Shown here: positions 1,593 through 42,737 of the stretch, one piece after another | Layout: the number at the start of each line of letters is the position of its first letter | Numbering within the stretch: position 1 is the first letter of the stretch | Assembly: GCA_030704615.1 (NCBI GenBank) | Contig: CM060734.1 | Location: forward strand, 8,494,001-8,558,000 | Direction of reading: 5' to 3' | DNA: 64,000 nt | Source: Takakia lepidozioides | Lineage: Eukaryota; Plantae; Bryophyta | Made by a program: the position numbers and the translations under genes | The notes under the pieces: model-generated | What the model saw: the letters and a program-made list of their open reading frames with translations, nothing else | What the model was told of the DNA's origin: nothing | Databases searched by the model: none

Positions 1593-1598
1593 GGAACA

Positions 1599-5000: not shown

Positions 5001-5334
5001 GAGCTACAAGAGGATGTGGAAGGCCTGCAGACTCAAGTGGATGACCTGAGTTCAAATATTGACAAGAGAGTCTTTGTTCCTGAGGAGCAGCTCATGGCTA
5101 CTTATTTACATGCCAAGACTCTAATTTTTCAGTCTTCTTCGCAGGGGGTGGAGGAGATGCCAGTGGTAGAAGGGCCAGTGGTACCAATACCACAGCAGGT
5201 GCTTGTGTAGGTAGCTGACCCTGTTGCTACTACAGCCAAACCACAGCTTGAGGTATGGGGGGATGCTGCTTTTAACCCACCTAGGACTCATGCTCGCTCA
5301 CAAAGGTTTGCTGATCCCAAACAGTAAACCGTGA
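2009..5334 (+). pseudogene. Linker plus accessory ORF of A1 (putative plant-transposon-protein N-domain, coiled coil; C-domain deleted)
   Basis: ORFs 2009..2506, 2427..2651, 2706..4016, 3989..4342, 4368..4550, 4569..4790 and 4797..5210 align with the other A copies. A deletion at ~5295 fuses the FNPP segment to the terminal HKGLLIPNSKP-stop (TGA 5332-5334). Confidence 0.8.
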
Positions 5335-5365
5335 GGACACGGCTTTTTGAGAGGGGGAGGGGTAA

Positions 5366-6284
5366 TGTTAGAGGGCTGCTTGGGACTTAGACGCTTTTAC
5401 GGGTTCTGTGGGGTACCCTTAATTTTTGCGCAGACTGAGACCAACAGGAGCCTTAGGGGTGGCAGGAGCAGACCTTAGGGGGGTTAGACAGCTCGTCACA
5501 GTCTATCACAGCCAGACACAGCTTTACACAGCCCGACACAGCTTTGCACAGCCAGTCACAGCCCGACACAATCTATCATAGCCAGACACAGTCTGACATA
5601 GCTTGACACAGCTTCGCACAGCCAGTCACAACCCGACACAGCTTTACACAGCCAGTCACAGCTCGGCACAGCTTGACATAGCCTGTCACAGTACATGGGG
5701 AACAGTTATCATTGACATGGAACGATATCTGCAGAGGGAACGTGTTACTTCAGGGGTGACGGTTAGTTAGTTAGGTGGTTAGAACAGCTTGCGGGTAGAT
5801 TAGGCAGAGCGGCAACAGGAAGGGGATCACTTCTTGAGGAGGGCGACTTGTTCAGGAGATGAGGAGACGTAACGGAGAGCGGAAACAGTGAAGATGAGAT
5901 GATGACTTGATTGAGGCTTAATTCATGCAAGCTGTAAAATTATACAGTAGGGTAGATTAGGGATACCATGGCATAGGCATGATACATGATTAATCTTAAT
6001 CCGATACTGAATCGATACAAACATATTGTGTAGAGAGACATGAGAGAAGCTGTGGAATGAATGCATGATTAATTGGAACTCCGATGCTTTAGTATACACG
6101 GTAAGGTAAATTGATAACATGAAGGCAAGAAGGAATAAAAATAGGAAGCACAACCATGATTCACTAGCTGCAGGTCATGACTGATTGTTCTGAGCGGGCT
6201 GAGTGCTTAGAGATATCCAACTCTTCTATCTTGGAGTTTCCACCTCGGATAGCGAAGGGATGGGTGAGTAAAAGCCGCTCGACA
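5366..6284 (+). repeat. 3' LTR of A1 (TG...CA) with CACAGC-rich tract at ~5490-5692
   Basis: Starts TGTTAG just after the PPT and ends GCCGCTCGACA, matching the LTR end that abuts the PBS at 45809 and 59034. Confidence 0.9.
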
Positions 6285-6294
6285 GCGACCCTGG

Positions 6295-7720
6295 TTGTCT
6301 GTCCCTCGTAGCATAGCTGTTATCAAAGACATTAAAATTAGTGAGATACCTGCCACGATTGCAACCATCGGACAAGAAATTGCAGGATGGACAGTAACGG
6401 AAGAAACTCAATTGATTCAAGTAAATCTGGGAACACTAGAAGAACCACAGATAATACGAGTAAGTACAGGTCTTGAAGAATCATTTCTACAAGAAGCCAC
6501 TGCATTATTCACTGAATACAAGGATATATTTGCCTGGAACTACAAAGAATTGAAGGGTATACCTTCCAACATCTGTCAACACCGAATTGAATTGGAAGTT
6601 GACACAAAACCAATTCAGAACCGTTACAGAATGAACCCCAACTATGCAGCTAAAGTTTGGGAAGAAATCAAGAAATTACTGGATACAGGATTCAAATACC
6701 CAGTAGAGACACCACAATGGTTATCGCCCATTGTGATAGTACCCAAGAAAAATGGAAAATTACGAGTATGTGTAGACTACCGCAAGTTAAACGCAGGAAC
6801 CAAGAAAGACCCCTTTCCACTACCTTTCACCGAAATAGTGTTGGACACAGTGGCTAGACATGAGATGTACTCATTCATGGACGGGTTTAGTGGGTACAAC
6901 CAGGTGCAGATGACAGAAGAAGACCGAGAAAAGACCGCATTCATCACTGAATGGGGAGCCTATGTTTACAAAGTCATGCCATTTGGACTTTGCAACGCAC
7001 CAGCCACGTTTCAGCGAGCAGTATCTGAGATATTCAAGAATTATCTCAACAATTTTATGCAGGTATTTTTGGATGATTTCAGTGTCTTCGGACAGAAATC
7101 CAAACACTTGGCACAGTTAAAACTTTGCCTACAAGCCTGTAGAAACAATGAAGTAAGTCTCAACCCGGAAAAATGTACATTTTGTGTGAATTCAGGATTA
7201 TTGTTGGGACACATTGTGTGCCAACAGGGAATTCTGGTGGATCCAAAGAAAGTGGAGGTTATCCAGAAAATACCACCACCAGAAAATCCCAAGAAACTCA
7301 AAAGATTTTTGGGACAGACAAGCTATTACAGAAGATACATGACAAATATGCTCACAAAGCGGCACCAGTCTATAGACTGCTGAAGCAAGATGCCGAATAC
7401 CGATGGTCTCCAGCTTGCCAGGAATCATTTGATTCACTAAAAATGGCACTCACAGCAGCACCAATTATGATAAATCCAAGATGGGATTTACCATTTCATG
7501 TACACAGTGATGCATCAGGCATTGCTTTGGGAGCAGTTCTAGCTCAGAATGTGACAGGCACAATAAATTCAACAATCTATTATGCAAGCAGATTGTTGAC
7601 AGCAGCCGAGAAGAACTATAGCACCACAGAAAGGGAAGCATTGGCAATGATTTATGATGTTCAAAAAATTTCGGTATTATTTACTTGGCAATCGCTTTAA
7701 GTTTATTGTTGATCATCAGG
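6295..7720 (+). pseudogene. pol: Pol fragment: reverse transcriptase and RNase H (family B)
   Basis: SPIVIVPKKNGKLRVCVDYRKLN, MDGFSGYNQV, MPFGLCNAPATFQR, VFLDDFSV; RNase H HSDASGIALGAVL, NYSTTEREALA, IVDHQ; frameshifts at ~7345 and ~7665. Confidence 0.95.
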
Positions 7721-7819
7721 TAGTGTGCTTCATACTGCTTATGATACAGGAATTGGTGCTCCAATTCCTTACAGCAACCACAAGACTAAGAGCGGAAGGC
7801 ACCAAGTTCTTATGCGCAA

Positions 7820-10735
7820 GTGAATTTCAAAATCAGCCCGGCGTTGCAGAAGATTGAGCAGGACACAGAGACACAGGAGACGTTGGACAGTCTTGGCCTG
7901 CGATACTTCATCACCACGCTGGACTTGAACCTTAAGCACAACGAGCTGTGCAAGGAGTTCTTGGAGAATTACAACACCAGCACTCGGAGCACAAATGTCC
8001 GCGACACACACATTCTGCTGACGGAGAAGTACTTGGCGGAAGTATTTCACCTTCCCAGTCTGGACTTACCGGCGCACAGCGGCAAACCTCCAAGGTTTGT
8101 ACTTGCAGATTTGTTTGAGAATCTCAACCAAGCAGATCAGGGCTACACATGCAGTCACAGCAAAAGCCCCGACTTTGGGAAGATAGCCCCGGTACTTCGC
8201 ACGTTGCTTTGCCTCAGGAAAAACCGCAGCTACTGTACCAAGGAGCTAATCGATCAAGTGTTGATTTGCCTCAATGGGCAAATCGTGAATATGGCAAGCT
8301 TCTTATTGAAGAAGTTAACCCAAGAATTGATCCGGTTGACAAAGAAGAAGAAGGAAGCAACTGTTACCATGGCTACTCCCTTGTTACTCCAAATGATTCG
8401 ACACACTGTACACCTAACACCCGAAGAGCAAGCGACGTTGGGGATTATGCTGCGGGTAGATACGATGGAGGAAGAAGGAAGTGACTCGGCAGCAGGTCAA
8501 GAAGGAGAAGAGGGTGGACTTGCAAAGAGAGCCTGGATCAACGAAGCAACCACAAGTGCAGCAGCAGAGGACATCATCAACTTGACGGCTGATTCCACAG
8601 TGCAGAGAGAAGGGGAGAATCAACAGCCAGAAGGAGGGAACCAACCACAGACCAATGAAGCAACACCCATGGAAATTAGCCATGGTAACACCGAAACCCT
8701 GCAAACAACACACGCAGAGGCCACACAACCAGAAATAGAGGAGGGAGACATAGTGGAGCAGCAACAGCAGATGGTGCAAGAGGCACCCAGTCAGCAGCAA
8801 CAGCAAGTGGTGCAAGAGGCACATAATCACTAGCAACAAGACAGTAATTCCAATTTGGAATTACTACTAGCACAACAGGTTCTGGATACAACAGCATGGG
8901 ACACAGGGTTGGAAGAAACGCCACAGAATGTAATTTTGCAGGCAATACAAGCATTGGGTCAAGTAAATAGCTTGTATGGATAGGGCCAAGGATTACATAA
9001 GCCCGGAGAACCTTAGCATGATTTTAGACCACGTCAAAGAGAAACACCAGAGGGAATTGGCGACAGCAAGAACAGTATGTAACCACGAGGTTACAATCGC
9101 AGCGTTAGAAGATCAAAAGACGACCTTATTTCGCCAATACAACACTTTGACACAACGCAGAGATGAGTGGGAGCAGAAGTGGCAAAGACAGCAAGACGAA
9201 ACACGCCATGTCCAAGCTGACCTTGATGCAGAGCGAGAACGATCTCGCAAAATAGAGACAGAGGTAGAAACACTCACAGGACAGGTGCAGACACTTAGGC
9301 AGCAGGTGGAGACACTCAAGGGGCAGCTCAAGACTGCCAAAGGGACCAGGGAAACAAGTGGCTCTCAAGCAACACTGTACTGCTGAGGGAAAGGGAGAAT
9401 GTTGAAAGCAGGCTGTTCACAGCCACCACAGAAAGAGACATTGCCATGGGCAATGAACAAGAATGGAAACAGCAGCTGGAGAAGATGACACTGCAAGCAG
9501 GGTTGGACGCAGCAGACGCAGCCTTGGCCAGAGCCTGGTTGAATGAATGAAGTGAACTAGAGATGAAGAAACTCAGCAAGGCAATGGTCAGACAGATGAA
9601 ATGTCAATTGGCGAAGTTGGTGACAGACATTCACGAGGAATTCCTGCCACCAATTCCAGAACAGGAGGAGCTCATGGATGAAGATGATCAAGAGGAGCAA
9701 GACCACGAACAAGAAGCACCGATACAATCAACAACAACAACACCAACACCAACACCAACACCACCAACAACACAACCACCACCAAGTCAACAGGCACTGG
9801 TACAGGCCACAACAAGGCCATCTACTCAAGAGGTAAACCCCATAACACTACCAAGTGTCCTGGTAGCATCAACTTCGGTAGCAGTGGATGATTTCCAAAT
9901 CATGCCATGCAAGCAGGGTGGGGAGTGGCTAAAGTATTCGGAGGAATATTTTAAAATGATGGTAGTCCCAGCCCACCAAATCCCAGAAATATTGGAGAAG
10001 GTCTTCAAAACCTTAACCCCCTGCAGATCATTGGGTCAATTGCATCTGCTCAATCAAACTCTTATACCTCTGAGATACAGGATGAGGCCACTGGCTAGGG
10101 AAGAGACATGGGCAAGGGCAGAATTGGTTGAATTCTGGCGCCAGGCTCCCCTGGAATACAAGGAGCTGGTAGCTTACATGTGGGCAGTGGGGCAATTGAA
10201 GATTAATCCTACCCCGGCAGTAGACATTGTAATGGGCTGCCCCAGTTTTTATATTGGCAGTTACTTGTACTGGATGTTCGTGACAATGAGGGGAAGCTGG
10301 CAGCGCTATGAGAGTATTGAAAAAGATACTCACTGGGAATTACCCAAATTCCAGCCACTAGAGAGAGTCGCAGGCACTTCAGCATACATGAACAGACCAC
10401 TATATGCTGAAGCATGGCGCCAGGCAAAAGACCACTTTCCACCATTGGTCTTGGACAGAGACCACCCTTTCAGAGATACAGGAATCCAAGCTGTTAACTG
10501 GTTAACGGGCAGCAGGGCGACTAAACACATTATACCCTGGACCAAGGAGGAGCTGCAAACCTACCAAGAAACCTTGACCACCAAAATCGACATGCTACGT
10601 GGGGACGGAGTGGCAGAACACCCTGATGACGAAAGTTGGCCCACTCATGAACCAGAGGAGCAACCAGACAGTGACGACAACAGGAACAAGAAGCTGCCAC
10701 CACGACAATCCTGGGACGCACTTCCTACCCCGTAG
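7820..10735 (+). pseudogene. Accessory 3' ORF of family B (N-domain, acidic/Q-rich linker, coiled coil, conserved C-domain)
   Basis: ORFs 7820..8833, 8976..9386 and 9563..10735 link through stops and frameshifts. LCKEFLENYN...NVRDTHILLTEKYLAEVFHLP parallels family A FMIQFLQNFE...QVRGVDIEITPQYLQQLFDLP; both share IVMGC. Confidence 0.8.
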
Positions 10736-11627: not shown

Positions 11628-12075
11628 CGTCGGACAACCTCTGTTGTATGTCTTTGGAAATGGGCAGTAGCGCTGATAGCCTGTTTTGTCTAAGTCAAAA
11701 ACCAGCGGTTAACAAGCTCCGACGTAAAGGTTGATCCAAGCTCAAATCTGGATCCATTCGAACCGTGCTGCAAAAATGGAGTGTAGGGGGTGCTATGTCT
11801 AATGACATCCCTCTCTAGGTCGGCCTCTTCCACAATTTTCATGTCAACTATCTCGCTGTTCTCCTCCTGAGGAACCTCCTATTCCTGCACACCAACCTGT
11901 TCGGCGAATAGGGAAAAGAGCTCGGTCAGTAATTCAAACTTTGGAAGTGCATCGGTTGCTACCGAGTGTACCATCACATACTTGCCTTGGTTTTCTCCAA
12001 ACAACCAGGCGATGCAGTCCGCATCAGACTCGCATTTGTATAATCCCGGACCTAGGGACCTGACTGCATCCTCTC
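11628..12075 (-). pseudogene. Unidentified exon-like reading frame with two TAG stops
   Basis: Minus frame reads REDAVRSLGPGLYKCESDADCIAWLFGENQGKYVMVHSVATDALPKFELLTELFSLFAEQVGVQE*EVPQEE...RWFLT*TKQAISATAHFQRHTTEVVR, then a GTATGC donor-like site. Confidence 0.35.
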
Positions 12076-14858
12076 CTCAGGTATCCCGATTTGATGCATT
12101 CTACTGTGATCTCTTGAGATTCAGGTGTTGAATGCCGCAGCGTCCCACTCCACAAACGATTAAATTTCTTTGTGGTGTCGCATCTATGTTTTACTTTTGA
12201 TCAATTTGCTCACTGTAGAATGCATGTTGGACATGGATAGCAACTGTGAAGACCTGCTACTCACCTCGTGCATCCTCACTAACACACATCTTGATGTGGT
12301 GGTTTTTGGGACGGGCACATGTGAGGGTCTTCACTTGATGTGTATTTTTTTTTTCAGTTTGCAGATGATCAAAGGACTTGGCGATGGTGACGATTGATGC
12401 TACAAACTGCTTCAGTGGGCAGATTCGGCCTCTCAACCTTAATGCTTTTTTGTTTTTATGGGTTGTAACCTGATTATAAGTCAGTTTTCTGGTATGATAC
12501 CAGTTTGAACTATGGCACCATATTAGTGGGGTTTTCAACCTGATTGTAAATCAGCTTTCTGGCACGATACCAGTCTGAGCTTCGGCTGCATTTTGATATG
12601 GTGCTGGAGTACCATCTCCAGACCTTATAAGGCTATCCAATGATGCTTAAGATAGGCCTTCTTATGTTGATTTAACACGGTAAGTACCAAGCGGTACTTT
12701 TTGGACATTGAGGTCAGAGTTCTAAATTTAAAATAGCCCTCGTTACACTGTTTTAACTTAGAGATTACCAAGCAGCTGGCGTGATGGGCTTTTCAGATTA
12801 CATAGCACCTGTTTTAAGGTTGCCAAGCGATGTCATTGGAACCATCCTTTGAATTTGAAACAGGTTCAGTTTTACCATGTTAACTTGGAAGGTACCAAGC
12901 TGTACTTGATTTGGAAGAATACCAAGCAGTACTTGACTTGGAAGAATACCAAGCAATGGTCTTGTTGGGCTTTTTCAAAATACGTAGGGGCTGGTTTAAC
13001 TTATCAAACTAGCCTTTTAGAATACCCTTTGAGCTGGTGTTGTCTATAAAGTTCTGATTATGCTCATTGTAGCAGTCCACTCTGATTGAGTTTTGGAGAT
13101 CGATGATTGGAAAACCAGATCCAGACCTTTGTGCATTCATAGAACATAGACATAGCATGTTGGCTGGTCTATATTATCAGGCTGGGCTCTTGGAATTGCA
13201 ACACCTGCAACTCATTCTTAAAGGCTCAAGTGTTTATGTTGATCTGGTATGTACCAAAGGTGGTGTTTGTCCCGATTGTTTTATAAGAAATACAAGACTC
13301 CTTCGATGATGAATGACATCTGAATCTAGGGTGATGGTTGTCTTGGAAATCCCACCCTCCCACCCTAATTTTTCATGTGTTTTCAGGAAGATGACATGAG
13401 TTTTTATCAGGTATGCCTATGGAAGGTGAAGTTAGATAGTGCCTTGTTATGAGGCTGATTTGTCGTTAATTTGACAAAGACCTTGTTTGGTCTTGTCCAT
13501 GTCCCGACAAGACATAGTATCTTCCCTCTCTATTCTTGACCAGTGTACTTAGTGGTTTCTGTACACACTCACTCTCTCTCTCTCACCTGCCATTTTCCAG
13601 TTTTCTTACTATGATGTACTAACACCTTTAGTGGCTTTTGCAGAGGTCTAGGAAAGCCATGGGGTATCAGCCCCCTATAACAATAGTGTGGAGCAACAAA
13701 TCCCTCATAAGGTATGATGATCCTCTCCAACAAAAATTTGTTGGCGGATTGGACAACGAGAGAAAGGCATTGCTGATATTACTTGAAGAACATCTAAGGG
13801 TTTCTTGCATACTGATATTATGAGCTAGGCCCAGGTAAAACAGCCTGTTAGAGTATGTGTGTACACCTTCTACATGATCCGGTCAATGCACATTACTCCT
13901 GTTAACTGGTAACCTGTAGTTGATGCCTTATGTCAGCATCAGATCCCTTATGATGAAAAGCCTTCCCTACTCGTGGGCTTTAATACTTCTCCTGGATGTG
14001 GGGTTGCTCTTTATAGCACCACTAAAAAAATGCCCAGGTGTAACGTGATATGTCATTTTTCATACCTTGAGGAAATATGGTTTTAAAACCATAAAGCTCG
14101 TTGATATGGTGAAAAGATGGGCAGCAGATTGCTGCCAATGTTCTTATTCACATGTTCATGTTGTGAATCACGGGCAGTAGACTACTGCCACTGGCTGAAG
14201 AACACGAGTTCTTATTCATACCTTTGGAAAAACGGTTCTAACCATAAAGTTGGCTGATATGGTGGAAAAATGTGCAGTAATTTACTGCCATCGGTTAAAG
14301 AACACCTGTAATTTCTGAACTCTTGCGTGCCCAGCTATATGAATGTTTTGTCCGTATTTTCTCTTGACTTGGGAAGCAGAGACTGTAGCTTTTTAACCAA
14401 AGATAAAACTACATCGCACGGAGATCCTGCCTTGGTCTCTACTTCTTTACAAGAGCTTGTTGACAAGATAAGAGGTAACATGGAAAACGCATGACTCTAT
14501 ATTCTTGCCAAGTTTGATTTATGCTATGCCAATGTTCACTCGTGATCTGAGGGCAGAGAGAATGTAGACCTTTTATCTTTTTGGTATTCAAGTCCAAGGA
14601 TAGAACTACATTGTAGAGGGAGACCTTATGAGAATGGGTCTGGTATGCACTCCCTTACGGGGTGAGCGCATACCACACGCACTCCATAAGGGACTGCCAT
14701 ATTAGGGGTTGGATGGTGGGCGCCCCCTCTCTCCAATTATCCATTTGGGATTAACAATTTTTTTTTCCTAAGCCTACCTGGTTTGGAAATACCTTCTTTC
14801 TAATCCCTAATGGAATATGTTTTGAATTTCATCCATACCGGATGGAAAATATGCTAGG
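12076..14858 (+). repeat. Repeat X, partial copy 1
   Basis: Near-identical to ~18859-21618. Confidence 0.95.
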
Positions 14859-17800
14859 AACTCATCGCATGTTTGCATCGCCCAACTTGGGGCGAGAGGG
14901 CAAACCTAAACCTTTTGTTGGTGGACGGGAGGACCTGCAGCGAGAGTACGACAGAATAGGCATTGGGGAGGTTGGTGCAGGCGGCATGGCAGGTGAAGGG
15001 CGTGAGGATGTGAGGACAACATATCCGGCAATGGAGGTTGTTGATGCACATGCTGTAGGGCCCGCCCACGCAAAGAAGAAGAAGAAAGTTAAGCACATGC
15101 AATCCCCGGCGAGAGAGCCATCACGGGCTGCGGAGGGGGGAGTGAGCAGTGCGCGCGAGGGTGTCAGTTCTCCTCAATCAAAGGTGGTCGTCCTGGAGGG
15201 CTCCCCTGCTGCTAGCCCTAGTAAGAAACAGAAAGCCCGTGAGAGGGCAAAAGAACAGGCGAGACAGAATGCTAGCTAGGAGGAAAGAGAAAAGGCCACT
15301 GAAGAGGCCAGGGGTGCCCAAATGACAGATGCCAATGTAAGCGAGGGACGCACAGAGACGGTGGATCCCTCCAAGACACCACAAAGAGGCAGTAACACAC
15401 CAGTTAGACCATCGCGGGCAAGAGCAGCCCCTGCAATTACCCATACAGTGGAGAGTGGAGGAGAGGAAAGAACACCAGAAAGAGCACGGATTGTGCCAGT
15501 TTGAGGTGAAGCCGGGGAGAGGGTAGTATAGACGGGGAGAGTGCTCGAGGTGGTTTCGCCGGTGGCTGACCATGTTGAGGAGGACGACAGGGAGCTTTCT
15601 GACCAGGATGACATCCTCCCGGATATCCCCAGGCCCCAAACCCGCAGCATACAGGCTGGATTTGGCGGTCCTGGTGGGCTGCCGGAGAACCCCTCTGCAG
15701 TAGACGTCATGTCGGAGGCGGATATGAAGTTGGCCGCTGCCAAGATGTTGGAGGCAACCCACAGCAACATTGGCAGGGTGCTGGGGGGCATGGTGTACCC
15801 GGCCAAGCTTCGGATTCCCCTTTGCCGCTTGGTGTCATTGCAGGTGGTGAGACTTGCCCTCCCAAGCGATATCGACAAGCTGAAATTCTCTTTCCGGGAT
15901 GGATATCGAATGGGGTCTGCCGTGTTTTACGTTTCCATTGAGAACGACCACGGAGCTTCCCGTGCCCACACTTCCGATGAGGTGGACAAATGGGGTCCCC
16001 ATTGGCAAAGGCGAAATGAGGAGTTCGAGAGAACAATTGCTACTGATCCTCTTTTCCAGCACTTGTCCGGTAAGATGTTTTACGTGTGGGACGGCAATCA
16101 TCGCCTCCTGGCATGGATGGAGCACATAGCCGAAGCCCACCCCAACGACCTCGATTGGCATTTCGCCGTGGAGTGTGTTGTGCTGAAGGTTGCGGGGCCC
16201 AAAGATCGCAGTATTCTCAAAGCTGCAATGGCGGACATCAACTCGTAAGTTACAACGCCTCTTGCTTTTGGACCCATCCAATTGTAAGTCATTTCATTGC
16301 GAATCCTCATATTTGTTGAAAATTCCCATTTCAGTATTGTTTGATGGAAATGTGGCATTGCAGGGTGACTGAGAATGCCTTCATTGCCACCAACTTGTCC
16401 CATATGCTCTTCCGAGTGAAGGATGTCGGGAAGCAGGGGGTGCAAGAGTTTGCCAATTCGCTCAGTGCCGTCCTCCTGCGCAAGTCGGAGGCAAAGGCAG
16501 ACAGAACCTGGTATAGGCTGAGCATGGACGCCATGGTGGACTACATATTTCGGGTAAAGCTCCTCACTGTTTTGTTGAGCTAATGTGTCTCTCCTCCCCC
16601 AATAGAAGAAAAAGTGTTGAGCAGGATCTCTAATCTTATGTGCGCATTCTTGACAGACAAAAATTCAGCAGGATTTGGCACATGCGCGGAGGTTCTACAT
16701 GGAGTCAGAGGAGAAGAATCTAACCTTCCCGGCACTCGAATCGTATCTCAAAGTTGCGGAGGCCAGGGCCCGCATAAAGTACAAGTCGCGGATGGTAAAG
16801 TACGTGGCCATAGCTGATCCCGCCCTTGGTGCCGACTTTCTGGTGGAGGTGGGGAAGCACTACTCCCGTGCTCTGAAGCCCACGATGACATTGGAGAAGC
16901 TCCATCGTCTAGCCACATCTTGTGTGGATGCAACAGAAAAGGTGATACATTCTTAACCAAATTGTGGTGGCAACAACTCGTTTTTGTGGTGTTTGGCGCT
17001 TATGAATATGCTGGGTGGTTGGACAGACCCGGTGGCTCCAAATCTGGAATGGTTCCCAAAGTACAAGGGACATGTGGAGCTTCCCCAAACCGGACAAACT
17101 GTCTGACCCCACATTCGACATGTGGATGAACCGCATGACATGGTGGTTTCAGGTACTTCCCCACGCTTCGTTTGGCGCTTCTACTCTTGTAGGGGGTGGA
17201 TTCATTGTATTTTTTGAGGAAAGCGATCTGATGGAGAATCTCCACAGGTGACAACAAATGCGCAAGAGAAGCTGGACACACAAGCACATCAGTTCAAGAT
17301 GGAGATTTCTCCTGCAGCAGAGAGCCTACGCGACTATGTGATGAGGTACTTTCTGCTCTACAAAACCGACCTATTCTTTCGGGAGATACCCCATGCCCGC
17401 CGGAGCCACGAGTTCACCGACCAGCCGAACGCGGACAAAGCAGCAATGCGCCTTCTGTACAGGTACATACGCGATGCCTTCCTTTCAAGTCCTTGCATTT
17501 CAGGATGTTAGAGGCCTCATGTGGCGCATGAAAATTGGTCTTTGGGAAAATGGCGCCAAATTTCCAGTTCAGGGCTCCAAAAATGGCTAAGTCCCTAGGG
17601 TGCCTGGCCCTAAACTGGAAATTCGGCGCCATTTTTCCAGTTCAAGGCCATATTACCGTTCTGGGACTTAGCCATTTTCGGGCCGGAAAAGGGAAAATGG
17701 CGCCGAATTTCCAGTTCAGGGCTCCGAAAATGGCTAAGTCCCTAGGGTGGCTGGCCCTGAACTGGAAATTCGGCGCCATTTTTCCAGTTCTAGGCCCTAT

Positions 17801-18780
17801 TACCATTATGGGACTTGGCCATTTTTGGGCCGGAAATGGGAAAATGGCGCCGATTTTCCAGTTCAGGGCTTCGAAAATGGCTAAAGTCCCTAGGGTGGCT
17901 GGCCCTGAACTGGAAATTCGGCGCCATTTTTCCAGTTCTAGGCACTATTACCGTTCTGGGACTTAGCCATTTTCGGGCCGGACCAGGGAAAATGGCGCCG
18001 AATTACCAGTTCAGGGCTCCGAAAATGGCTGTCCCTAGGGTGGCTGGCACAAAAAACCGAAATTCGGCGCCATTTTTCGAGTTTTAGGCCCTGGCAGTTT
18101 TGGAACTTAGCCATTTTCGGGCCATACCGGGAAAAATGGCGCCGAATTTCCAGTTCCGGGCTCCCAAGATGGCTAAGTCCCTAGGGTGGCAGTCACCGAA
18201 AACTGAAATTCGGCGCCATTTTTCCATTTCTAGGCCCAGTCAGATCCGCCCCTACCTAGGAAAATGGTGCCGAATTTGCAGTTCAGGGACCTCATTGGGT
18301 TTTTCATGAATGCAGGTACTGCAAGTTCTCCCTTTTAGAGAAAGGTCATCTGTCTTTCGAGCCACCATTCTTCCTGGCATGGAGGAACCCTGGGGCTGAC
18401 TCCATGTACACTGACGATATTGTGAAGGAGTGGCATCTGGAACATTTGCATGATTGCCCTTGGTATGTGGACCATCCGCCCGGCTTGCTCGACCCATCCG
18501 AGTTTCAATTGAAGCTGGATGCTGAGGCCCGACGAAACCGGGCTCCGCTGTCTCCGCTGGGTGCAAAAGAGGCAAAAGCACTTGCGAACTCCAGGAAAGC
18601 GGCAGAGCTTGCTCAGGCAGGAATTCAGGAGAAATTGAATAAGAAGCATAAAGGCCAAAGGAAAAGGACAAGGAAACAGGTGAGTACAGTAACACCCAAA
18701 AAACAGAAAACCATCGGGGCATCGGAGGAGGCGCAGGAGGGGACCCAAGTGAGTGACTCGGACGACTCGGACGACTCGGC
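14859..18780 (+). pseudogene. Six-exon gene encoding a ParB/Sulfiredoxin-like domain protein, truncated at both ends by repeat X
   Basis: Exons ~14859-16244, 16364-16553, 16657-16941, 17027-17152, 17248-17462 and 18316-~18780. All five introns are GT-AG and phase-compatible. Motif GKMFYVWDGNHRLLAW (DGNHR 16090-16104). Exon 1 has in-frame stops at 15277, 15502 and 15529. Confidence 0.8.
17544..18290. repeat. ~147-bp tandem array (5+ units) built of interleaved inverted repeats, inside intron 5
   Basis: TGGCGCC/TGGTGCC anchor at 17551, 17698, 17845, 17993, 18137 and 18265. Confidence 0.95.
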
Positions 18781-21700
18781 AATCTTTCCTATTCATGAAG
18801 CAGCAGTGCTCATAAGGTGATGGGGGAAGTATCATGCACTTTGTAAATGTGCAATTTGTCCTCAAGTATCCCGATTTGTTGCATTCTGCTATGATCTCTT
18901 GAGATTCAGGTGTTGAATGCCGCAGCGTCCCACTCCACAAACGATTAAATTTCTTTGTGGTGTCGCATCTATGTTTTACTTTTGATCAATTTGCTCACTG
19001 TAGAATGCATGTTGGACATGGATAGCAACTGTGAAGACCTGTTACTCACCTCGTGCATCCTCACTAACACACATCTTGATGTGGTGGTTTTTGGGACGGG
19101 CACAGGTGAGGGTCTTCACTTGATGTGTATTTTTTTTTCAGTTTGCAGATGATCAAAGGACTTGGCGATGGTGACGATTGATGCTACAAACTTCTTCAGT
19201 GGGCAGATTCGGCCTCTCAACCTTAATGCTTTTTTGTTTTTATGGGTTGTAACCTGATTATAAGTCAGTTTTCTGGCATGATACCAGTCTGAACTTTGGC
19301 ACCATATTAGTGGGGTTTTCAACCTGATTGTAAATCAGTTTTCTGGCACGATACCAGTTTGAGCTTCGGCTGCATTTTGATATGGTGTTGGAGTACCATC
19401 TCCAAACCTTATAAGGCTATCCAATGATGCTTAAGATAGGCCTTCTTATGCTGATTTAACACGGTAAGTACCAAGCGGTACTTTTTGGACATTGAGGTCA
19501 GAGTTCTAAATTTAAAACAGCCCTCGTTACATTGTTTTAACTTAGAGATTACCAAGCAGCTGGCGTGATGGGCTTTTCAGATTACATAGCACATGTTTTA
19601 AGGTTGCCAAGCGATGCCATTGGAACCATCCTTTGAATTTGAAACAGGTTCGGTTTTACCATGTTAACTTGGAAAGTACCAAGCTCTACTTGACTTGGAA
19701 GAATACCAAGCAATGGTCTTGTTGGGCTTTTTCAAAATACGTAGGGGCTGGTTTAACTTATCAAACTAGCCTTTTGGAATACCCTTTGAGCTGGTGTTGT
19801 CTATAAAGTTCTGATTATGCTCATTGTAGCACTCCACTCTGATTGAGTTTTGGAGATCGATGATTGGAAAACCAGATCCAGACCTTTGTGCATTCATGGA
19901 ACAGAGACATAGCATGCTGGCTGGTCTACATTATCAGGCTGGGCTCTTGGAATTGCAACACCTGCAACTCATTCTTAAAGGCTCAAGTGTTTATGCTGAT
20001 CTGGTATGTACCAAAGGTGGAGTTTGTCCCGATTGTTTTATAAGAAAAACAAGACTCATTCGATGATGAATGACATCTGAATCTAGGGTGATGGTTGTCT
20101 TGGAAATCCCACCCTCCCACCCTAATTTTTCATGTGTTTTCAGGAAGATGACATGAGTTTTTATCAGGTATGCCTATGGAAGGTGAAGTTAGATAGTGCC
20201 TTGTTATGAGGCTGATTTGTCGTTAATTTGACAAAGACCTTGTTTGGTCTTGTCCATGTCCCGACAAGACATGGTATCTTCCCTCTCTATTCTTGACCTG
20301 TGTACTTAGTGGTTTCTGTACACACACACTCTCTCTCTCTCTCTCTCACCTGCCATTTTCCAGTTTTCTTACTATGATGTACTAACACCTTTAATGGCTT
20401 TTGCAGAGGTCTAGGAAAGCCATGGGGTATCAGCCCCCTATAACAATAGTGTGGAGCAACAAATCCCTCATAAGGTATGATGATCCTCTCCAACAAAAAT
20501 TTGTTGGTGGATTGGACAACGAGAGAAAGGCATTGCTGATATTACTTGAAGAACATCTAAGGGTTTCTTGCATACTGATATTATGAGCTAGGCCCGGGTA
20601 AAACAGCCTGCTAGAGTATGTGTGTACACCTTCTACATGATCCGGTCAATGCACATTACTCCTGTTAACTGGTAACCTGTAGTTGATGCCTTATGTCAGC
20701 ATCAGATCCCTTATGATGAAAAGCCTTCCCTACTCGTGGGCTTTAATACTTCTCCTGGATATGGGTTTGCTCTTTATAGCACCACTAAAAAAATGCCCAG
20801 GTGTAACGTGATATGTCATTTTTCATACCTTGAGGAAATATGGTTTTAAAACCATAAAGCTCGTTGATATGGTGAAAAGATGGGCAGCAGATTGCTGCCA
20901 ATGTTCTTATTCACATGTTCATGTTGTGAATCACGGGCAGTAGACTACTGCCACTGGCTGAAGAACACGAGTTCTTATTCATACCTTTGGAAAAACAGTT
21001 CTAACCATAAAGTTGGCTGATATGGTGGAAAAATGTGCAGTAATTTACTGCCATCGGTTGAAGAACACCTGTAATTTCTGAACTCTTGCGTGCCCAGCTA
21101 TATGAATGTTTTGTCCATATTTTCTCTTGACTTGGGAAGCAGAGACTGTAGCTTCTTAACCAAAGATAAAACTACATCGCACGGAGATCCTTCCTTGGTC
21201 TCTACTTCTTTAAAAGAGCTTGTTGACAAGATAAGAGGTAACATGGAAAACGCATGACTCTATATTCTTGCCAAGTTTGATTTATGATATGCCAATGTTC
21301 ACTCGTGATCTGAGGGCAGAGAGAATGTAGACCTTTTATCTTTTTGGTATTCAAGTCCAAGGATAGAACTACATTGTAGAGGGAGACCTTATGAGAATGG
21401 GTCTGGTATGCACTCCCTTACGGGGTGAGTGCATACCACACTCACTCCATAATGGACTGCCATACCAGGGGTTGGATGGTGGGCGCCCCCTCTCTCCAAT
21501 TATCTGTTTGGGATTAACAATTTTTTTTCCTAAGCCTACCTGGTTTGGAAATACCTTCTTTCTAATCCCTAATGGAATATGTTTTGAATTTCATCCATAC
21601 CGGATGGAAAATATTCCAGGTATAATCCCTAACTGGATGAATTATTGTCTTGAGCTTTACCACTAAGGATGTAGCCTACAAATTTTCATCCATGATGGAT

Positions 21701-21815
21701 TACATCCATCCTGGATGTTACATAACAAATGTAAACCTAAGAGGATGTAACTCTAATGAAGTGCAAAATTTCATCCCAGTGGATGAAATCACGGGATGGT
21801 TTGCTAACCGCCTCT
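18779..21815 (+). repeat. Repeat X, copy 2 (longest)
   Basis: Near-identical to copies at 12076, 30442 and 39136. Confidence 0.95.
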
Positions 21816-21820
21816 AATGG

Positions 21821-22058
21821 AGTACATCACCCATACCGGAAGAACTAGATGATTCCCCTATGTCTATTCCTCTCTCCCAAAGATATGGATAATTAGCTTT
21901 CAAATAACTTTCTCTTTTTGCTGAATATCTCTGGAGTCTAGCTTCTCTTTCATCACTCATGTCCCATGTCTTTCATTTCTTTTAATGTGGCAATAACCAA
22001 AACTCTCTTCTGTAATATCTCTCGTATATGCCTGGGTTTCTTTCAAGCTTCAATGCAC
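21821..22058. mobile_element. Two small family-A 5'UTR/gag-start fragments in opposite orientations
   Basis: 21821-21849 is the reverse complement of 58257-58285; 21848-22058 matches 58314-58525 directly. Confidence 0.85.
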
Positions 22059-25000
22059 GTTCATAAAGGAGTGGCTGGAGGACATTTTGGAGAAGAGACT
22101 ACCAGTAGGAAGATACTACTTGCAGGTTACTGGTGGCCTACTTTGTTCAAGGATGTACACAAGTATTGTCAGAGTTGTGATGAATGTCAGAGGCTGGGAC
22201 CCTTGCAGAGATCTGGGAAGATGGCTTTGCATCCTACGATGCCTACTGAACCATTTCAGAAATGGGGACTAGACTTTGTCGGACCAATTAACCCACCGGC
22301 CAAGAATACACAGAACAAGTATATAATTACAGCCACTGATTATACTACGAAGTGGGTGGAAGCTAAAGCTCTGAGGGACAACACAGCTAAGTCCACAGCA
22401 AGGTTCCTGTATGAGAACATACTTACACGATTTGGCTGTCCCTTGGAATTTATCAGTGACCAGGGAAGTCACGTCATTAATGAGACCATTGAACTATTGA
22501 CTAAAGAGTTCATGATTGTGCATAGGAAGAGTACAACGTATTACCCGCAGGGTAATGGGCAGGCAGAGGCTACCAACAAAATACTATGTACTATCTTGGC
22601 TAAGATAGTCAATGCAAACAGAACGGATTGGGATACAAAGCTGCTGACAGCTTTGTGGTCATACAAGACTTCATATAAAGTCACCACTAAGTATACACCA
22701 TTCCAATTAGTTTATGATATGGAAGCTTTACTTCCAGTGGAATTCTTGTTACCTACCATGAGAACGGAATGGGGAAAGAGAATGGAATTGGAAGATTCAA
22801 TTAAGGTCAGGAAACATGAATTATACCATGTGGAAGAAGTACGTGCTGATGCAGCTGATAACATGACCAGAATTCAGATGAAGAGGAAGGAATAATTTGA
22901 CGAAGGCAAATTAAAGACTTTTAAGACGGGGGATTTGGTTCTCTGGTTGCAGAAGAAGGGGAAAATTAAAGCTTCTAAGCTTAAATCACCATGGAAAGGA
23001 CCTTATGTCATACAGAAGATGTATGATAACAACACCGCCATGTTACAAACCATTAACAAAGAGATGCTGGGAAGAGTCAATGCCAATAAGTTGAAGGGGT
23101 ACAGTGGTATCCATGACAAACCATTGCAGCACGATTTGCATGTTGAAACGCAAAAGCAGTCACGGGCTGCGCCAGTGATACCAACGGAGTATGAAGCACT
23201 TGTTGCTAAGCTGAGCGTATATGACCAGGGCGGGCAGTACAAGCGTGACACAACCTATCACAGCCCATCACAGTGTCACACAACCTATCACAGCCCATCA
23301 CAGTGTCACGCAGCCTATCACAGCCCATCACTGTGTCACACAGCCTATCACAGCCCATCACAGTGTCACACAGCCTATCACAGCCCATCACAGCGTGACA
23401 CAACCTATCACAGCCCATCACAGTGCCACACAACCTATCACAGCTCAACACAGCCTACCGGGGTTACACAGTCCATAGGATTAGTGACCGGTGTACGTGG
23501 GTTAACATCCGGAGAGTGGCCGGCGGAAAAGTGGACGGAGGCAGGTTTAGAAATGGACACGTGGATGCCAGGGCGAGACACACAACCGGACATGAATTGC
23601 AAGAACGGGTGTCATCAAGAAAGAAGACAAAATTGGCCGTCAAAGTACCTACCCGGCACGTTTATTAAAATTTATTGTGGGCCCATTAATGCATACATGA
23701 AAAGGGTAACGGAACCCATTGCAAGTACAGAAAAGCAAAATCCTTGTCACATAGGCTATCCTAATGGACAGTCCAGGGGGGAAAATCCACGGAAGGGAAT
23801 TAAATTACAAAATCAATCACAGAGCCAACAGCCAATCATAAGCCAGAATTACCTGCAGAGGGAATTTTCCAAGAAGCAAGATCAAGAATTTAGAGGAATT
23901 CTGAGAGTCGGCGTCGTTCCAAGTAACGGGCGTCTCGACGGGAGAGACAATCAAAGCTATAGCTTTGAAGCTATGGCGGAAATAACAGACTACACACTCG
24001 CATTACTACTTACGCAGTGGCACAAGGACGGACGAACGGAGAGTACCTTTTCTCTAGATCGATACTTGCAAGCCCCACAGGCTTACAAGCACTTACCCAT
24101 TTCATTCTACGCCAACCATACTTTTATGTTTTGTGCCCTGCAGGCGTTTCTTCAGTTGTTACAACCAAAACCTTTCTGTTTGTCTAGAATGAAGAGAGTG
24201 AGAGGAATGGAGGATATCAGGGTGAAGAGTACCACAATCTTACAGAAGCAAACGATTGCTACACCACAGGCGGTGCAGCTACTGAAGGAGCTGCGATTGG
24301 AGGGATTGCTACGCAAGGACTGGTCCTTGCATCATCGGCAGTTCATGATACAATTTCTTCAGAACTTTGAGCCTCGGACGGGAGTTACTCAAGTGAGGGG
24401 AGTAGATATAGAAATTACTCCCCAGTACCTGCAGCAATTGTTTGATTTGCCATCAGGACATGTGGATGTGGATAAGCACAGGGCAAGATTGCAAATAGGG
24501 AATTTGTTCCAAGAAGGGAGTTTCTTTAAAACTCAAGGCTACGCTTGTACCAAAGCCGAGTACCCAGGGCTTAGGGAAGTTGGCCAAATATTGAACGTTC
24601 TGTTTGCCATGAAACAGAACCAACAGTATTTGAGCAGGTCATTCACAGATCCTGAAAGCTTTAAGGGGAGAGGATGTCGCTTGGGCGGAGTTAATGTACA
24701 ACGGATTGGTGGACGAGATGAAGAGGTTACAGGGCACTGCTGCTAAGTCTACGATCATTGTGTCCGGTCCAGTCATTGCCCAAATAATTCTTGATTCTTG
24801 CATACTTGATACTCGGGAACGTAAGGAGATATGAGTGTTTGAGGCAGAAACCACTGCAATTGAAGAGCAAGGCTCTTCACACAGTGAGGGTGGACTGGCA
24901 GCGCAACACCAGTCTAAGAGACAGAGGCGGGGTATGACTGTAGTGGCGGATCCACTGGCTTCACGGAAACTGCACGATAATGTTTCCCAAGCTCTTGTGC

Positions 25001-26977
25001 AGGATGGGGCACAGCAGCACAGAGAGCTGCTATTATTGGAAGCAGGGCCTTCAGAGAGGGAAGAGGAAGTCACTTCGATACCACAGCCACCACAACCAAT
25101 TGACTCTGTTGTTTTAGAGGTTCCACAGTTAGTATATGTTGTGGCATCACCCCCAATTGCTCTGGAAGGAGAAAGGTTGGACATTCCCACTACAGAGCAG
25201 GTCGTGGCCGAAATTGAGAAGGGTGACCTTCTCTATGAAAATTCTGGCTTGGTAAGGGAAACAGTGGTTCCAGAGAGGCAGCAGTTGTCTAGGGGAAACC
25301 CTGCTGTGCATGTAATACCCACACCTGTGACGGAGGTACCAGGGGTAGAATATCAAGACACTGCAGCACCTGTGGCGGATGAGGTGGTTCAGGAAGAAAA
25401 TCTGGTGGGGCAATGGCCTGATGGTTCGTGAGGCATCACACTATTGAGGATCAGGGAGAACAACAGCAAGCTCACCATGATGACCCTCAGCAGGCCATGC
25501 TTATGAGTTCCATAAGCAGAACACTTAATTTGTTGGGCACTTATGTGAACTCCCATGTTCCATCTACCCAATTGGCAGCTTTGAGGGAGGAACTCAGGAA
25601 GGAGTTTGAGGCTCGACTTGCCACTGAGTGTGCTAACAAGGTCGATGAGGAGGTCAATCTCAAGTTACAGCAAGAGTTAGAGGATACAAAAGCTGCTTGC
25701 AGTTGGCCAAGGAACATTTGATTGAAGCAGGCCTCGGGCAGGACCAGTTGCACGAAGCACATAAACAACAGTTATACCAAATGCAGGTGAAGCATGAGGG
25801 CAAGTTGCAAGAAGTGAATGCACTACATATAGAGTTGCAGGCAGTACATGAGAGGATGACCATACAATGTGCTACACTCACAACTACTCTTGAGCAAACT
25901 GCATTAGAAGTTAACAGACAAGGGGAGAGATGTATGAAGGCAGAGGCAGAGAATGTCGAGCAAGCGAAACTCATTGTTGATATGAAGAATACAATCTGTC
26001 GTAATGAGAATACTTTCAAGCAATACAGACAGGTTGAAGCTGACCAAAAGAGGTACATCCTGGAATTGCAACAAACGGTCATGGTAAATAGAAATGAACT
26101 CTCTGTGGCTAACAAGGCTTGGAAAGAAGCCAATAATCTGGCTGCTGCCTATGCGAGTTTGGTTGAACCTCATGCAAAGCGCATGGAGGCTTTACAGCAG
26201 CAGTTAGATGTGTACAGGCTCACAGAGGAGCAGATTCTCAGGGGTGTCACCACAACTTGGTGGATAACCACCTTATGCAGGTCTAGTTAGCACAAGGGCC
26301 GGTGGAAGGCAAAGCACCACGGAAGCTCACCTAGGGCAAGATGAATGAGCTCAGACTGCAGGTGCAGAACATTGCCACAACTACTATAGACAATGTCTAT
26401 AGTAGGATAGCGGAGCTACAGGAGGATGTAGAAGGCCTGCAGACTCAGGTGAATGACCTGAGTTCAAATATTGACAAGAGAGTCTTTATACCTAAGGAGC
26501 AGCTGATGGCTACTTATTTACAGGCCAAAACTCTAATTTTTCAGTCTTCTTCGCAAGGGGTGCAGGAGATGCCAGTGGTAGAAGGGCCAGTGCTACCAAT
26601 ACCACAACAAGTGACTGTGCAGGTAGCTGACCCTGTTGTTACTACAGCCACACCACAGCCTGAGGTATGGGGGGATGCTGCTTTTAACCCACCTAAGACT
26701 CCTGCTGCACGAGAATACAGTCGGGCTATGATTATGCCCTTCAACCAAATTCCCATTGTGTTGGATTTGGCTTGGAAGGAATTTAGTCCTCCGCAGTCGT
26801 TGGCACATTACTACCAAATCATGCGCATTTGGCTGCCAGTGGCAACTAGGACTAAGGTTCTTCCGAACAATCGACCCATTGAGGATCATCACTTTGCGAG
26901 GTACTGGTCTGAAGCAAGTACCATGTTAAAGGAATTAAGTGCCTTCCAAGTTGTACATGGATACATTTATACCAAGA
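22059..26977 (+). pseudogene. pol: Family A (copy A2): integrase, linker and accessory ORF
   Basis: HKGVAGGHFG...CDECQR (HHCC), WGLDFVGP, ISDQGSH, GQAEATNK (DDE), WKGPY; one TAA at 22893, then an open frame 22896-24646 running into MKRVRGMEDIRVKS. Confidence 0.9.
23248..23455 (+). repeat. 30-bp coding tandem repeat (about 7 copies; T[T/A]YHSPSQCH)
   Basis: cacarcctatcacagcccatcacagtgtca repeated; degenerate counterpart at ~52000-52312 (minus). Confidence 0.95.
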
Positions 26978-28498
26978 TCATCGATCTCCAAAACTCAATC
27001 AGAGTGGAGTGCTATAATGAGCATAATCAGAACTTTATAGACAACACCAGCTCAAAGGGTATTCCAAAAGGCTAGTTTGATAAGTTAAACCAGACCCTAC
27101 GTATTTTGAAAAAGCCCAACAAGACCACTGCTTGGTATTCTTCCAAGTCAAGTACAGCTTGGTACTTTCCAAATTAACATGGTAAAACTGAACCTGTTTC
27201 AAATTCAAAGGATGGTTCCAATGGCATCGCTTGGCAACCTTAAAACAGGTGCTATGTAATCTAAAAAGCCCATCACGCCAGCTGCTTGGTAATCTCCAAG
27301 TTAAAACAGTGTAACGAGGGCTGTTTTAAATTTAGAACTCTGACCTCAATGTCCAAAAAGTACCGCTTGGTACTTACCGTGTTAAATCAGCATAAGAAGG
27401 CCTATCTTAAGCATCATTGGATAGCCTTATAAGGTCTGGAGATGGTACTCCAGCACCATATCAAAATGCAGCCGAAGCTCAGACTCGCATCGTGCCAGAA
27501 AACTGATTTACAATCAGGTTGAAAACCCCACTAATATGGTGCCAAAGTTCAGACTGGTATCATACCAGAAAACTGACTTATAATCAGGTTACAACCCATA
27601 AAAACAAAAAAGCATTAAGGTTGAGAGGCCGAATCTGCCCACTGAAGCAGTTTGTAGCATCAATCGTCACCATCGCCAAGTCCTTTGATCATCTGCAAAC
27701 TGAAAAAAATACACATCAAGTGAAGACCCTCACCTGTGCCCGTCCCAAAAACCACCACATCAAGATGTGTGTTAGTGAGGATGCACGAGGTGAGTAACAT
27801 GTCTTCACAGTTGCTATCCATGTCCAACATGCATTCTATAGTGAGCAAATTGATCAAAAGTAAAACATAGACGCGACACCACAAAGAAATTTAATCATTT
27901 GTGGAGTGGGACGCTGCGGCATTCAACACCTGAATCTCAAGAGATCACAGCAGAATGCAACAAATCGGGATACTTGAGGACAAATTGCATATATTACAAA
28001 GTGCATGATACTTCCCCCATCACCTTATGAGCGCTGCTGCTTCATGAATAAGAAATATTGCAGGCAAACACAACAGTAGGTCATTTGCCAGTGCGGGAAA
28101 TGGAAGGGTCTGCCGCCATCGCGCAAGAAAAAACAAAATGCACGCGGATCTCAGCTCAGCCCCCATCGCCATCCTCCAGAGAAAACAAGCACGAGTATCG
28201 TGTCGTGCCTAGGGCAGAGAGGCGGTTAGCAAACCATCCCGTGATTTCATCCACTGGGATGAAATCTTGCACTTCATTAGAGTTACATCCTCTTAGGTTT
28301 ACATCCGTTAGGGTAACATCCAGGATGGATGTAATCCATCATGGATGAAAAAATGTAGGCTACATCCTTAGTGGTAAAGCTCAAGACAATAATTCATCCA
28401 GTTAGGGATTATACCTGGCATATTTTCCATCCGGTATGGATGAAATTCAAAACATATTCCATTAGGGATTAGAAAGAAGGTATTTCCAAACCAAGTAG
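26977..28498 (-). repeat. Repeat X, inverted copy spanning the end-to-start junction
   Basis: Reverse complement of ~38699-40223. Confidence 0.95.
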
Positions 28499-30358: not shown

Positions 30359-30446
30359 GGAGGTAGCAAGTATTGTCATGGGCTGTGGATTATACTATGC
30401 TGCTTGTTTTCTGGCATGTTATCACATTGAGCAGCAGAAGATGCAA
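30359..30446 (+). mobile_element. 88-bp sense fragment of the accessory ORF (EVASIVMGC...QQKMQ)
   Basis: Reverse complement of ~48438-48526; directly continues the ORF that breaks at 26977. Confidence 0.85.
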
Positions 30447-42730: not shown

Positions 42731-42737
42731 TATAACT

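Follow-up and report, generated by a model that had tools for sequence, protein, structure and literature searches.

A decayed gene with a ParB/sulfiredoxin-like fold in Takakia lepidozioides, probably an accessory gene from a family of DNA transposons in seed-free land plants

The region studied here is a stretch of 64,000 nucleotides of the Takakia lepidozioides genome (GenBank assembly GCA_030704615.1, contig CM060734.1, positions 8,494,001 to 8,558,000 of the forward strand), referred to as the window and numbered from its first nucleotide. At positions 14859–18780, its plus strand contains the remains of a spliced gene for a protein with a ParB/sulfiredoxin (Srx)-like domain, which an earlier note, made from the sequence alone, had described as transposon-borne and pseudogenised. 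We consider this fragment probably to be a dead accessory gene of a family of cut-and-paste DNA transposons of seed-free land plants, a reading that includes a proposed mechanism by which the elements would recognise themselves.

The fragment consists of six exons and five introns. A script check of the gene model, with the window read from 14700 to 18900, shows that all five introns are bounded by GT and AG and that the six exon frames, beginning at 14860 in exon 1, join without any shift through junctions of phase 2, 0, 0, 0 and 2; the introns proposed in the earlier note are therefore borne out in position and phase. Together the exons measure 2667 nucleotides, or about 889 codons. Exon 1 (14859–16244), truncated at its 5' end, encodes a disordered, lysine-rich amino-terminal region with three stop codons, followed by the ParB/Srx-like domain; the tract KKKKKVK, which resembles a nuclear localisation signal (NLS) and had been pointed out before, is read at 15073–15093. 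Intron 1 (16245–16363, GTAAGT..CAG, phase 2) is followed by exon 2 (16364–16553), intron 2 (16554–16656), exon 3 (16657–16941), intron 3 (16942–17026), exon 4 (17027–17152), intron 4 (17153–17247) and exon 5 (17248–17462). Intron 5 (17463–18315, 853 nucleotides), most of which is filled by a palindrome array, leads to exon 6 (18316–18777). This last exon, truncated at its 3' end, contains a conserved block, 'FLAWRNP...CPWYVDHP', and then a basic/acidic tail; its frame continues for 13 codons into the flanking repeat, up to a stop codon at 18818–18820.

The in-frame stops of exon 1, three as had been claimed, are located at 15277–15279 (TAG), 15502–15504 (TGA) and 15529–15531 (TAG), all of them within the poorly conserved, low-complexity, lysine-rich amino-terminal part. 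The gene is pseudogenised, as proposed, but the piece 15541–16242, which runs from RIPLCR through DGNHR and holds the ParB core, is still open, as are exons 2 to 6. Both ends are cut, and the junctions with the flanking repeat, at 14854–14858 and 18777/18778, match the limits given for the fragment beforehand. The window copy is dead: it lacks its 5' end, carries three stops and lacks the carboxy-terminal domain present in its relatives. Judging from the sequence, translation from the in-frame ATG at 15709 might in principle still yield a protein made up of the ParB-like domain and the helical region that follows it.

For the searches, exon 1 was queried as three separate pieces (14860–15276, 15322–15501 and 15541–16242) and every exon piece was searched on its own; the middle and carboxy-terminal domains were examined on annotated proteins of the liverwort Riccia sorocarpa, rather than on the joined window exons. 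Six related loci were compared, L001 to L003, L005 and L006 from European Nucleotide Archive (ENA) assemblies and L004 from Riccia. The amino-terminal pieces of exon 1 have no match. Exon 2 matches open reading frames (ORFs) of L001, L003, L005 and L006, exon 4 matches ORFs of L001 and L005, exon 3 matches the Riccia proteins P0191 and P0204 and the Adiantum protein P0160, and exon 5 has a weak match to P0160 (E 0.009). In one metagenome relative, exons 2, 4 and 6 all match ORFs, with their order kept.

The ParB/Srx-fold core is encoded by 15802–16242, residues 88–234 of the piece 15541–16242, with RIPLCR in the first beta-strand and the DGNHR motif (16090–16104) at a strand-helix junction. 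An AlphaFold2 model of the piece, built on an alignment with 13 relatives, has predicted local distance difference test (pLDDT) values of 75–90 for residues ~88–234. In this model DGNHR follows a strand formed by residues 180–182 and opens a helix formed by residues 186–199, the position taken by GERR in ParB and by GCHR in sulfiredoxin. When the model was compared with the PDB by Foldseek, the top matches were Noc, ParB, sulfiredoxin, KorB, PadC, SbnI and SerK, with probabilities up to 0.99 and E-values of 0.04–0.4, and the top ten were all Noc, ParB or sulfiredoxin. A VIA search of 48,161 chains ranked KorB first (Z 7.5, root-mean-square deviation 2.5, 91 residues), followed by PadC (7.1), Arabidopsis sulfiredoxin (6.8), SerK (6.6), Atu1540 (6.0), human sulfiredoxin (6.0), SbnI (5.6) and the ParB-N domain of pNOB8 (5.5), while the next chain reached a Z of 2.7. 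The eight best structural matches are thus all members of the superfamily, in agreement with the ParB/Srx reading of the earlier note. The ESM-Atlas shape search also returned ParB_N clusters, and at the level of sequence there is weak support through PHROG 1033, 'ParB-like partition protein', matched at residues 178–215 of the piece with an E-value of 0.007.

The domain matches no curated sequence family. No match to the ParB-like domain was obtained in NCBIfam and Pfam with 14 relatives, Pfam searches with all eight exon pieces gave only matches at chance level, and with the ParB exon neither the sequence search nor the profile search of the PDB gave any. The model supports a ParB/Srx fold for the exon-1 domain, with membership of the superfamily assigned by fold and motif only. 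Sulfiredoxin proper was rejected: DGNHR lacks the catalytic cysteine of FxGCHR, and the protein measures ~900–1200 amino acids, against ~100 for sulfiredoxin, in line with the distinction from plastid sulfiredoxin drawn earlier. In terms of language-model features, the ESM-Atlas clusters closest to 15541–16242 are fungal DUF3723 proteins and a cnidarian cluster, with scores of 0.95–0.94. DUF3723 is a conserved accessory gene of the Starship giant transposons. Pfam searches gave no match to PF12520 (DUF3723) at E<=5 for the window exon and its relatives, and no link was found at the level of sequence; if the link were true, DUF3723 would gain a ParB/Srx fold.

A word search with 15541–16242 found 13 unnamed ORFs, 36–45% identical, that share the endpoint '...AMHDIN(K/R)', which coincides with the intron-1 donor. 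Invariant among the aligned relatives are RIPLC, VR, GY, DGNHR and A-W. Conservation of the DGNHR motif, on which the earlier reading depended, is complete in the 14 close relatives aligned (14/14). Among the 133 members of the wider family that cover the site, 77 have DGNHR and 92 have (D/E/N)GNHR, the remainder being single-substitution variants, as expected of decaying copies. The position of intron 1 is equally constant, with a phase-2 donor two bases downstream of the AMxDIN codons at 7/7 loci (the window and L001–L006, Riccia included). Bacterial contamination was rejected, since the spliceosomal introns are conserved. A profile search of 1.84 billion representatives returned 1019 proteins at E<=1e-3, of which 497 at E<=1e-10. 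The majority of these are ORFs the size of an exon, found in metagenome or Logan contigs, whereas the long annotated members belong to two ferns, Adiantum nelumboides and A. capillus-veneris, and to Riccia sorocarpa. In Riccia, the family forms at least 37 clusters at 90% identity, spread over contigs of eight different sizes, and many of the copies are truncated.

The annotated Riccia protein P0204 (1207 amino acids) is colinear with the window: the piece 15541–16242 corresponds to its residues 175–303, exon 3 to residues 433–452 and exon 6 to residues 612–662. P0191 is likewise colinear with the window exons. The middle region, of ~400 residues, was modelled on residues 290–700 of P0191 with the window exons as alignment rows; the model (pLDDT 78) is all-helical, and fold searches with it returned generic helical hairpins and no meaningful match in the PDB. 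Beyond the part that corresponds to the window exons, the full-length Riccia proteins have an additional carboxy-terminal domain resembling N6/N4-methyltransferases, which intact relatives in ferns and moss-like contigs also possess. Of 16 such domains, seven contain partial matches to PF01555 (N6_N4_Mtase) at model positions 166–218, with a best E-value of 9.4e-6 and a best score of 26.2 bits, below the gathering score of 26.7. A profile of the domain aligns to CcrM and DpnA across the regions of motifs IV and I, and motif IV comes before motif I, as in the beta-class amino-methyltransferases. Motif I, which binds S-adenosylmethionine, is kept as GDxVxDxxGGxG, with GD(I/V/L)V(I/V)D..(G/A)G.G conserved in the relatives. 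The catalytic motif IV, (D/N/S)PP(Y/F/W), is absent; D(L/M/I/V)P(T/S/E/N)(G/N) is found in its place throughout Riccia and the moss-like contigs, which makes methyltransferase activity doubtful or at least unusual. The guess that intact copies might carry a downstream methyltransferase proved right as regards the domain, given the partial PF01555 matches and the alignment to CcrM and DpnA. In the 64-kb window, tblastn with full-length and carboxy-terminal Riccia proteins revealed no remnant of the domain, only exons 1 and 6 being matched; the window copy lacks it because the gene was cut in the basic/acidic linker.

In L003, L004 and L005, six-frame comparison places a second conserved gene, here called X, head-to-head upstream of the ParB-like gene. 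Gene X is present in very high copy, with 245 clusters, many of them with tens of members. Its nearest neighbours by ESM features are MULE, ZSWIM and SWIM clusters (0.94–0.88), and its consensus contains a conserved Cys/His finger and a MULE-like 'C.FHW' block; from these sequence features it is probably a Mutator-type transposase. The amino-terminal half of an X gene is also present in the window, on the plus strand at 558–1864, and is 34–41% identical to the X genes of L003, L004 and L005. Relative to the ParB-like fragment it does not have the usual head-to-head orientation, so that the two fragments probably derive from different copies of one family. An unrelated DUF7869 gene (PF25273, E 1e-39) lies downstream of the ParB-like gene and tail-to-tail with it on the minus strand of L005 (12875–15095) and L001 (5916–7571); it could represent another transposase-like gene of the element, or else belong to a neighbouring element.

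The transposon-borne nature claimed for the gene agrees with its multiple copies, at least 37 clusters in Riccia, and with its pairing with a high-copy transposase-like gene. It could alternatively be regarded as a host gene family, either domesticated or acquired horizontally as an epigenetic enzyme, with the window copy as a decayed paralogue in a nest of repeats. Many members are indeed annotated as genes in Riccia, their domains suggest modification of chromatin or DNA, and Marchantia has functional N4-methylcytosine (4mC) methyltransferases of bacterial type (10.1101/2021.02.12.428880). Nevertheless, dozens of diverged and often truncated copies per genome, constantly adjacent to a high-copy transposase-like gene and to palindromes of their own, are not what a host gene would lead one to expect, and the Marchantia enzymes have the motif TSPPY, which the present family lacks. 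We hold the host-gene explanation to be very improbable.

Palindromes accompany the ParB-like gene at the loci compared. In the window, most of intron 5 is taken up by a tandem array (17544–18237) of 4.7 copies of a 147-bp unit, which contains a 24-nucleotide inverted repeat (GGCGCCGAATTTCCAGTTCAGGGC, with a 31-nucleotide spacer) and a second inverted repeat of 19 nucleotides; within the window the 24-mer is confined to this array (0 expected elsewhere). The 12-mer GCCGAATTTCCA, allowing at most one mismatch, occurs 12 times in the window, against 0.27 expected: nine copies are in the intron-5 array and three at 83–202, just upstream of the X fragment, where two of them form a 24-bp palindrome (83–106). 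Arrays are present in the equivalent of intron 5 in five loci, namely the window, L002, L003, L006 and, as a small array, L005. In L002, L003 and L006, arrays with units of 329, 406 and 267 bp, respectively (1155–10000, 5874–9977 and 92–5409), run right up to the start of the ParB-like gene's first exon and reappear in the intron preceding the equivalent of exon 6. An invariant 14-bp palindrome, TGTCGGATCCGACA, is common to the arrays of these three loci, with 35, 14 and 21 copies; it appears to be under constraint, because this core is unchanged while the rest of the array unit has diverged. In Riccia L004, the interval that separates X from the ParB-like gene contains repeats of ATTCCGGCGAG..CTCGCCGGAAT, and another palindrome is found downstream; L005 has palindromes with arms of 21–26 nucleotides, both upstream and in introns.

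Several observations weigh against our reading. Two of them concern the palindromes: in the model of the Riccia middle region no ParB-type helix-turn-helix is seen after the amino-terminal domain, and the DUF7869 genes have upstream palindrome arrays of their own (L005 15582–16047, L001 7998–8761), which makes it conceivable that arrays are a general transposon feature bound by transposase. This is the core of the main rival explanation, in which the ParB-like gene is still transposon cargo, but the palindromes are subterminal or promoter repeats bound by the Cys/His finger (WRKY/GCM-type) of the transposase, or are hitch-hiking, and the ParB/Srx domain is a nucleoside triphosphate (NTP)-dependent enzyme (a kinase or nuclease, like SerK, SbnI and Osa) or a protein-interaction module. 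The conserved finger of X fits such a role, the helical middle region offers no other DNA-reading fold either, and the top fold matches include sulfiredoxin, SerK and SbnI, which do not bind DNA. Less easily accommodated are the arrays within intron 5 of the ParB-like gene itself, in five loci, and those that stop at its first exon in L002, L003 and L006; a similar association has been reported for the ParB-like gene of the red-algal Plavaka elements (10.1101/2025.02.11.637652). On balance this explanation appears doubtful, with enough in its favour to be kept in view.

The other adverse points concern the fold and the limits of the element. The Foldseek E-values are only 0.04–0.4 and a VIA Z-score of 7.5 is within the range reachable by chance, an origin against which the unbroken run of superfamily members in the first eight places argues. 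PF02195, the Pfam ParB_N family, has no match at E<=1 to 5 in the window exon and 13 relatives. For X, Pfam gave no match in 23 members and so does not confirm it as a MULE, and a profile search of the PDB gave no match. Terminal inverted repeats and target-site duplications enclosing the element were not defined in Riccia L004, the candidate arms there being either the ends of Stowaway-like miniature inverted-repeat transposable elements (MITEs) or a 33-nucleotide pair that leaves one array outside. The Stowaway-like ends (ACTCCTTCTGTCCGGAAATAAGTGTC...) flank the Riccia element region at L004 2133–2200 and 15990–16030, and mimic the terminal inverted repeats of a large element.

The fragment in the window lies between two copies of an LTR (long terminal repeat)-like repeat, R, which has TG..CA ends. 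The left copy (12074–14854, 2.8 kb) abuts the 5' break of the gene and the right copy (18778–21618) its 3' break, both on the plus strand; in a self-comparison of the window, the left copy is 96.7% identical to 18859–21614, in the same orientation. The breaks were placed by aligning the junctions with other R copies. Further copies are at 26977–28498 (minus), 30442–31944, 38651–40469 and 40470–41790 (minus), so that the window contains six or more, in both orientations; one pair is palindromic and head-to-head, with arms at 39771–40336 and 40470–41035, 133 nucleotides apart. R adjoins Ty3/gypsy ORFs, with gag at 41748–42836, protease at 32095–33114 (minus) and integrase at 21966–22892. At 38651–39136 and, reverse-complemented, at 28498–28061, a 352-bp stretch connects the end of R with the start of R, in the place taken elsewhere by the gene fragment.

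This arrangement is compatible with two histories. The gene may have been cut by two LTR-type insertions, or the fragment may have come to form the interior of an LTR-type element; it would then be a captured region (R, fragment, R), lying antisense to the retroelement transcript. Capture is a serious possibility, somewhat short of an even one. In its favour, the two R copies are oriented alike and 96.7% identical, the fragment occupies the exact place of the 352-bp internal piece of the other R-R copies, and the gag ORF after the opposite-orientation R copy at 41748 puts the sense strand of the retroelement opposite to that of the gene, an antisense position that would explain why the introns were retained. 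However, the sequence beyond the right R copy (21621–21815) resembles the internal piece of other copies, as expected if that copy were the 5' LTR of a separate element, and the first 80 bp are missing from the left R copy.

The surroundings contain other repeats. A 3.2-kb repeat is present in three copies (2107–5294, 23534–26706 and 48857–51447, the last on the minus strand), which are 78–88% identical; its long ORFs (2706–4016 and 22935–24743) have no Pfam match. An ORF for a reverse transcriptase (6295–7383, RVT_1, E 7e-28), located between the X and ParB-like fragments, is part of the retroelement nest. An assembly gap of 500 N is present at 59639–60138, and ORFs listed across it are artefacts.

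Returning to the ParB-like gene as the accessory gene of a cut-and-paste transposon, the following mechanism may be proposed. The intact protein consists, in this order, of an amino-terminal region, the ParB/Srx domain, the all-helical domain of ~400 residues, the basic/acidic linker and the methyltransferase-like domain. Its disordered, lysine-rich, NLS-like amino-terminus would take it into the nucleus, and its ParB/Srx domain is predicted to present the (D/E)GNHR loop at the site that serves nucleotide binding in ParB, sulfiredoxin and related kinases. The elements carry family-specific palindrome arrays between X and the ParB-like gene and in intron 5, and the protein may recognise its own element through these palindromes, as ParB recognises parS. 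Once there, it could modify the DNA or, if the methyltransferase is inactive, shield or mark the element against silencing by the host. Such a putative device for anti-silencing or self-marking would resemble VANC of the Arabidopsis VANDAL elements. The window copy has lost its 5' end and all that follows the linker, has acquired three stops and lies wedged between two LTR-like repeats; it has no function left, except possibly the titration of factors by its palindrome array.

A stronger version of this proposal is that seed-free land plants have a nuclear ParB–parS-like system, in which the ParB-fold protein loads, possibly gated by nucleotide, on palindromes in its own promoter and intron, and then spreads or recruits the methyltransferase-like domain. 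We judge this unlikely. If it were true, no transposon family would mark or shield copies other than its own, the rapid change of palindromes from family to family, around a core that stays invariant while the arrays diverge, would reflect co-evolution between protein and site, and the same fold might underlie DUF3723 of the Starships, for which the ESM features give no more than a lead.

The closest published analogue of the land-plant family is found in the Plavaka elements of the red alga Bostrychia. There, PAG3 combines a ParB-like amino-terminal domain, detected with HHpred, with a 2-oxoglutarate (2OG) oxygenase and lies beside tandem arrays of inverted repeats, PAG2 is a PF01555 methylase with a SET domain, and the authors suggest that these proteins bind and modify the DNA of their own element (2025 preprint, 10.1101/2025.02.11.637652). 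The likeness, which is drawn from the published descriptions and not from sequence comparison, is considerable: in both cases a DNA transposon carries as cargo a ParB-like amino-terminal domain that is seen by remote homology only, inverted-repeat arrays lie beside its gene, and a PF01555-type methylase is present in the same element. The best HHpred match of PAG3, 7BNR, is also in the Foldseek list of the window domain. Unlike in PAG2 and PAG3, the ParB-like and methylase-like domains are fused here, with the large helical domain between them, and neither 2OG oxygenase nor SET domain is present; the partner is probably of Mutator type, and the hosts are a liverwort, ferns and the source of moss-like contigs.

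Fusions of ParB_N with N6_N4_Mtase in bacteria and phages have the same order, a ParB-type domain followed by a beta-class amino-methyltransferase, and are the probable ultimate source of the family by horizontal transfer. They differ from it in that the plant proteins have introns, an NLS-like tail, the 400-residue helical insert and DLPxG in motif IV, and have no PF02195 match. In eukaryotes, ParB-HTH-Dam fusions, where HTH stands for helix-turn-helix, have been described in chlorophytes and chytrids only; the same review describes phage methylases of ParB-terminase loci, and land plants are stated to show few N6A methyltransferases (Iyer, Zhang & Aravind 2015, PMC4738411). With the canonical CTP-dependent DNA clamps ParB, Spo0J, KorB and Noc, the domain shares the fold of the amino-terminal domain and a basic motif at the strand-helix junction where GERR sits, and palindromic sites are likewise clustered near the gene. 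It differs from these clamps in that no HTH is seen in the model of the Riccia middle region, in having neither GERRxRA or ENLQR boxes nor a ParA partner, and in its eukaryotic and nuclear context.

Within bryophytes, the Marchantia 4mC methyltransferases MpDN4MT1a and MpDN4MT1b, which are encoded by two host genes arranged in tandem and are expressed in sperm, have the motif TSPPY (10.1101/2021.02.12.428880). They resemble the present family in that they, too, are N4/N6 amino-methyltransferase domains of bacterial type encoded in the nucleus of a bryophyte, and differ from it, since they have TSPPY and no reported ParB domain, where the family has DLPxG and a transposon-like repetition. VANC of VANDAL is comparable by role, no relation by sequence or fold being known: it is an accessory protein of Mutator-type elements with family-specific arrays of short motifs in their non-coding parts, and serves as a model for recognising an element's own copies and altering their epigenetic state, although it has no ParB or methyltransferase domain. 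Very few cases are known of a transposon whose protein recognises and epigenetically alters its own copies; in the preprint on the Plavaka elements, VANDAL with VANC is the only one named (10.1101/2025.02.11.637652).

In our search of the literature, no paper was found on a ParB-methyltransferase fusion, or on its palindromes, in land plants. The value of the Takakia locus itself is limited, as it is a dead, truncated copy, and lies in the intronic array and in the motif that this array has in common with the transposase fragment. What the family offers is a fusion of a ParB fold with a methyltransferase-like domain whose conservation, intron included, extends from liverworts to ferns and which is always found amid private palindrome arrays. 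If the proposed self-recognition is true, it would represent a second, independently evolved module of this kind, of bacterial or phage origin, and would extend the observation made on the red-algal Plavaka elements to land plants.

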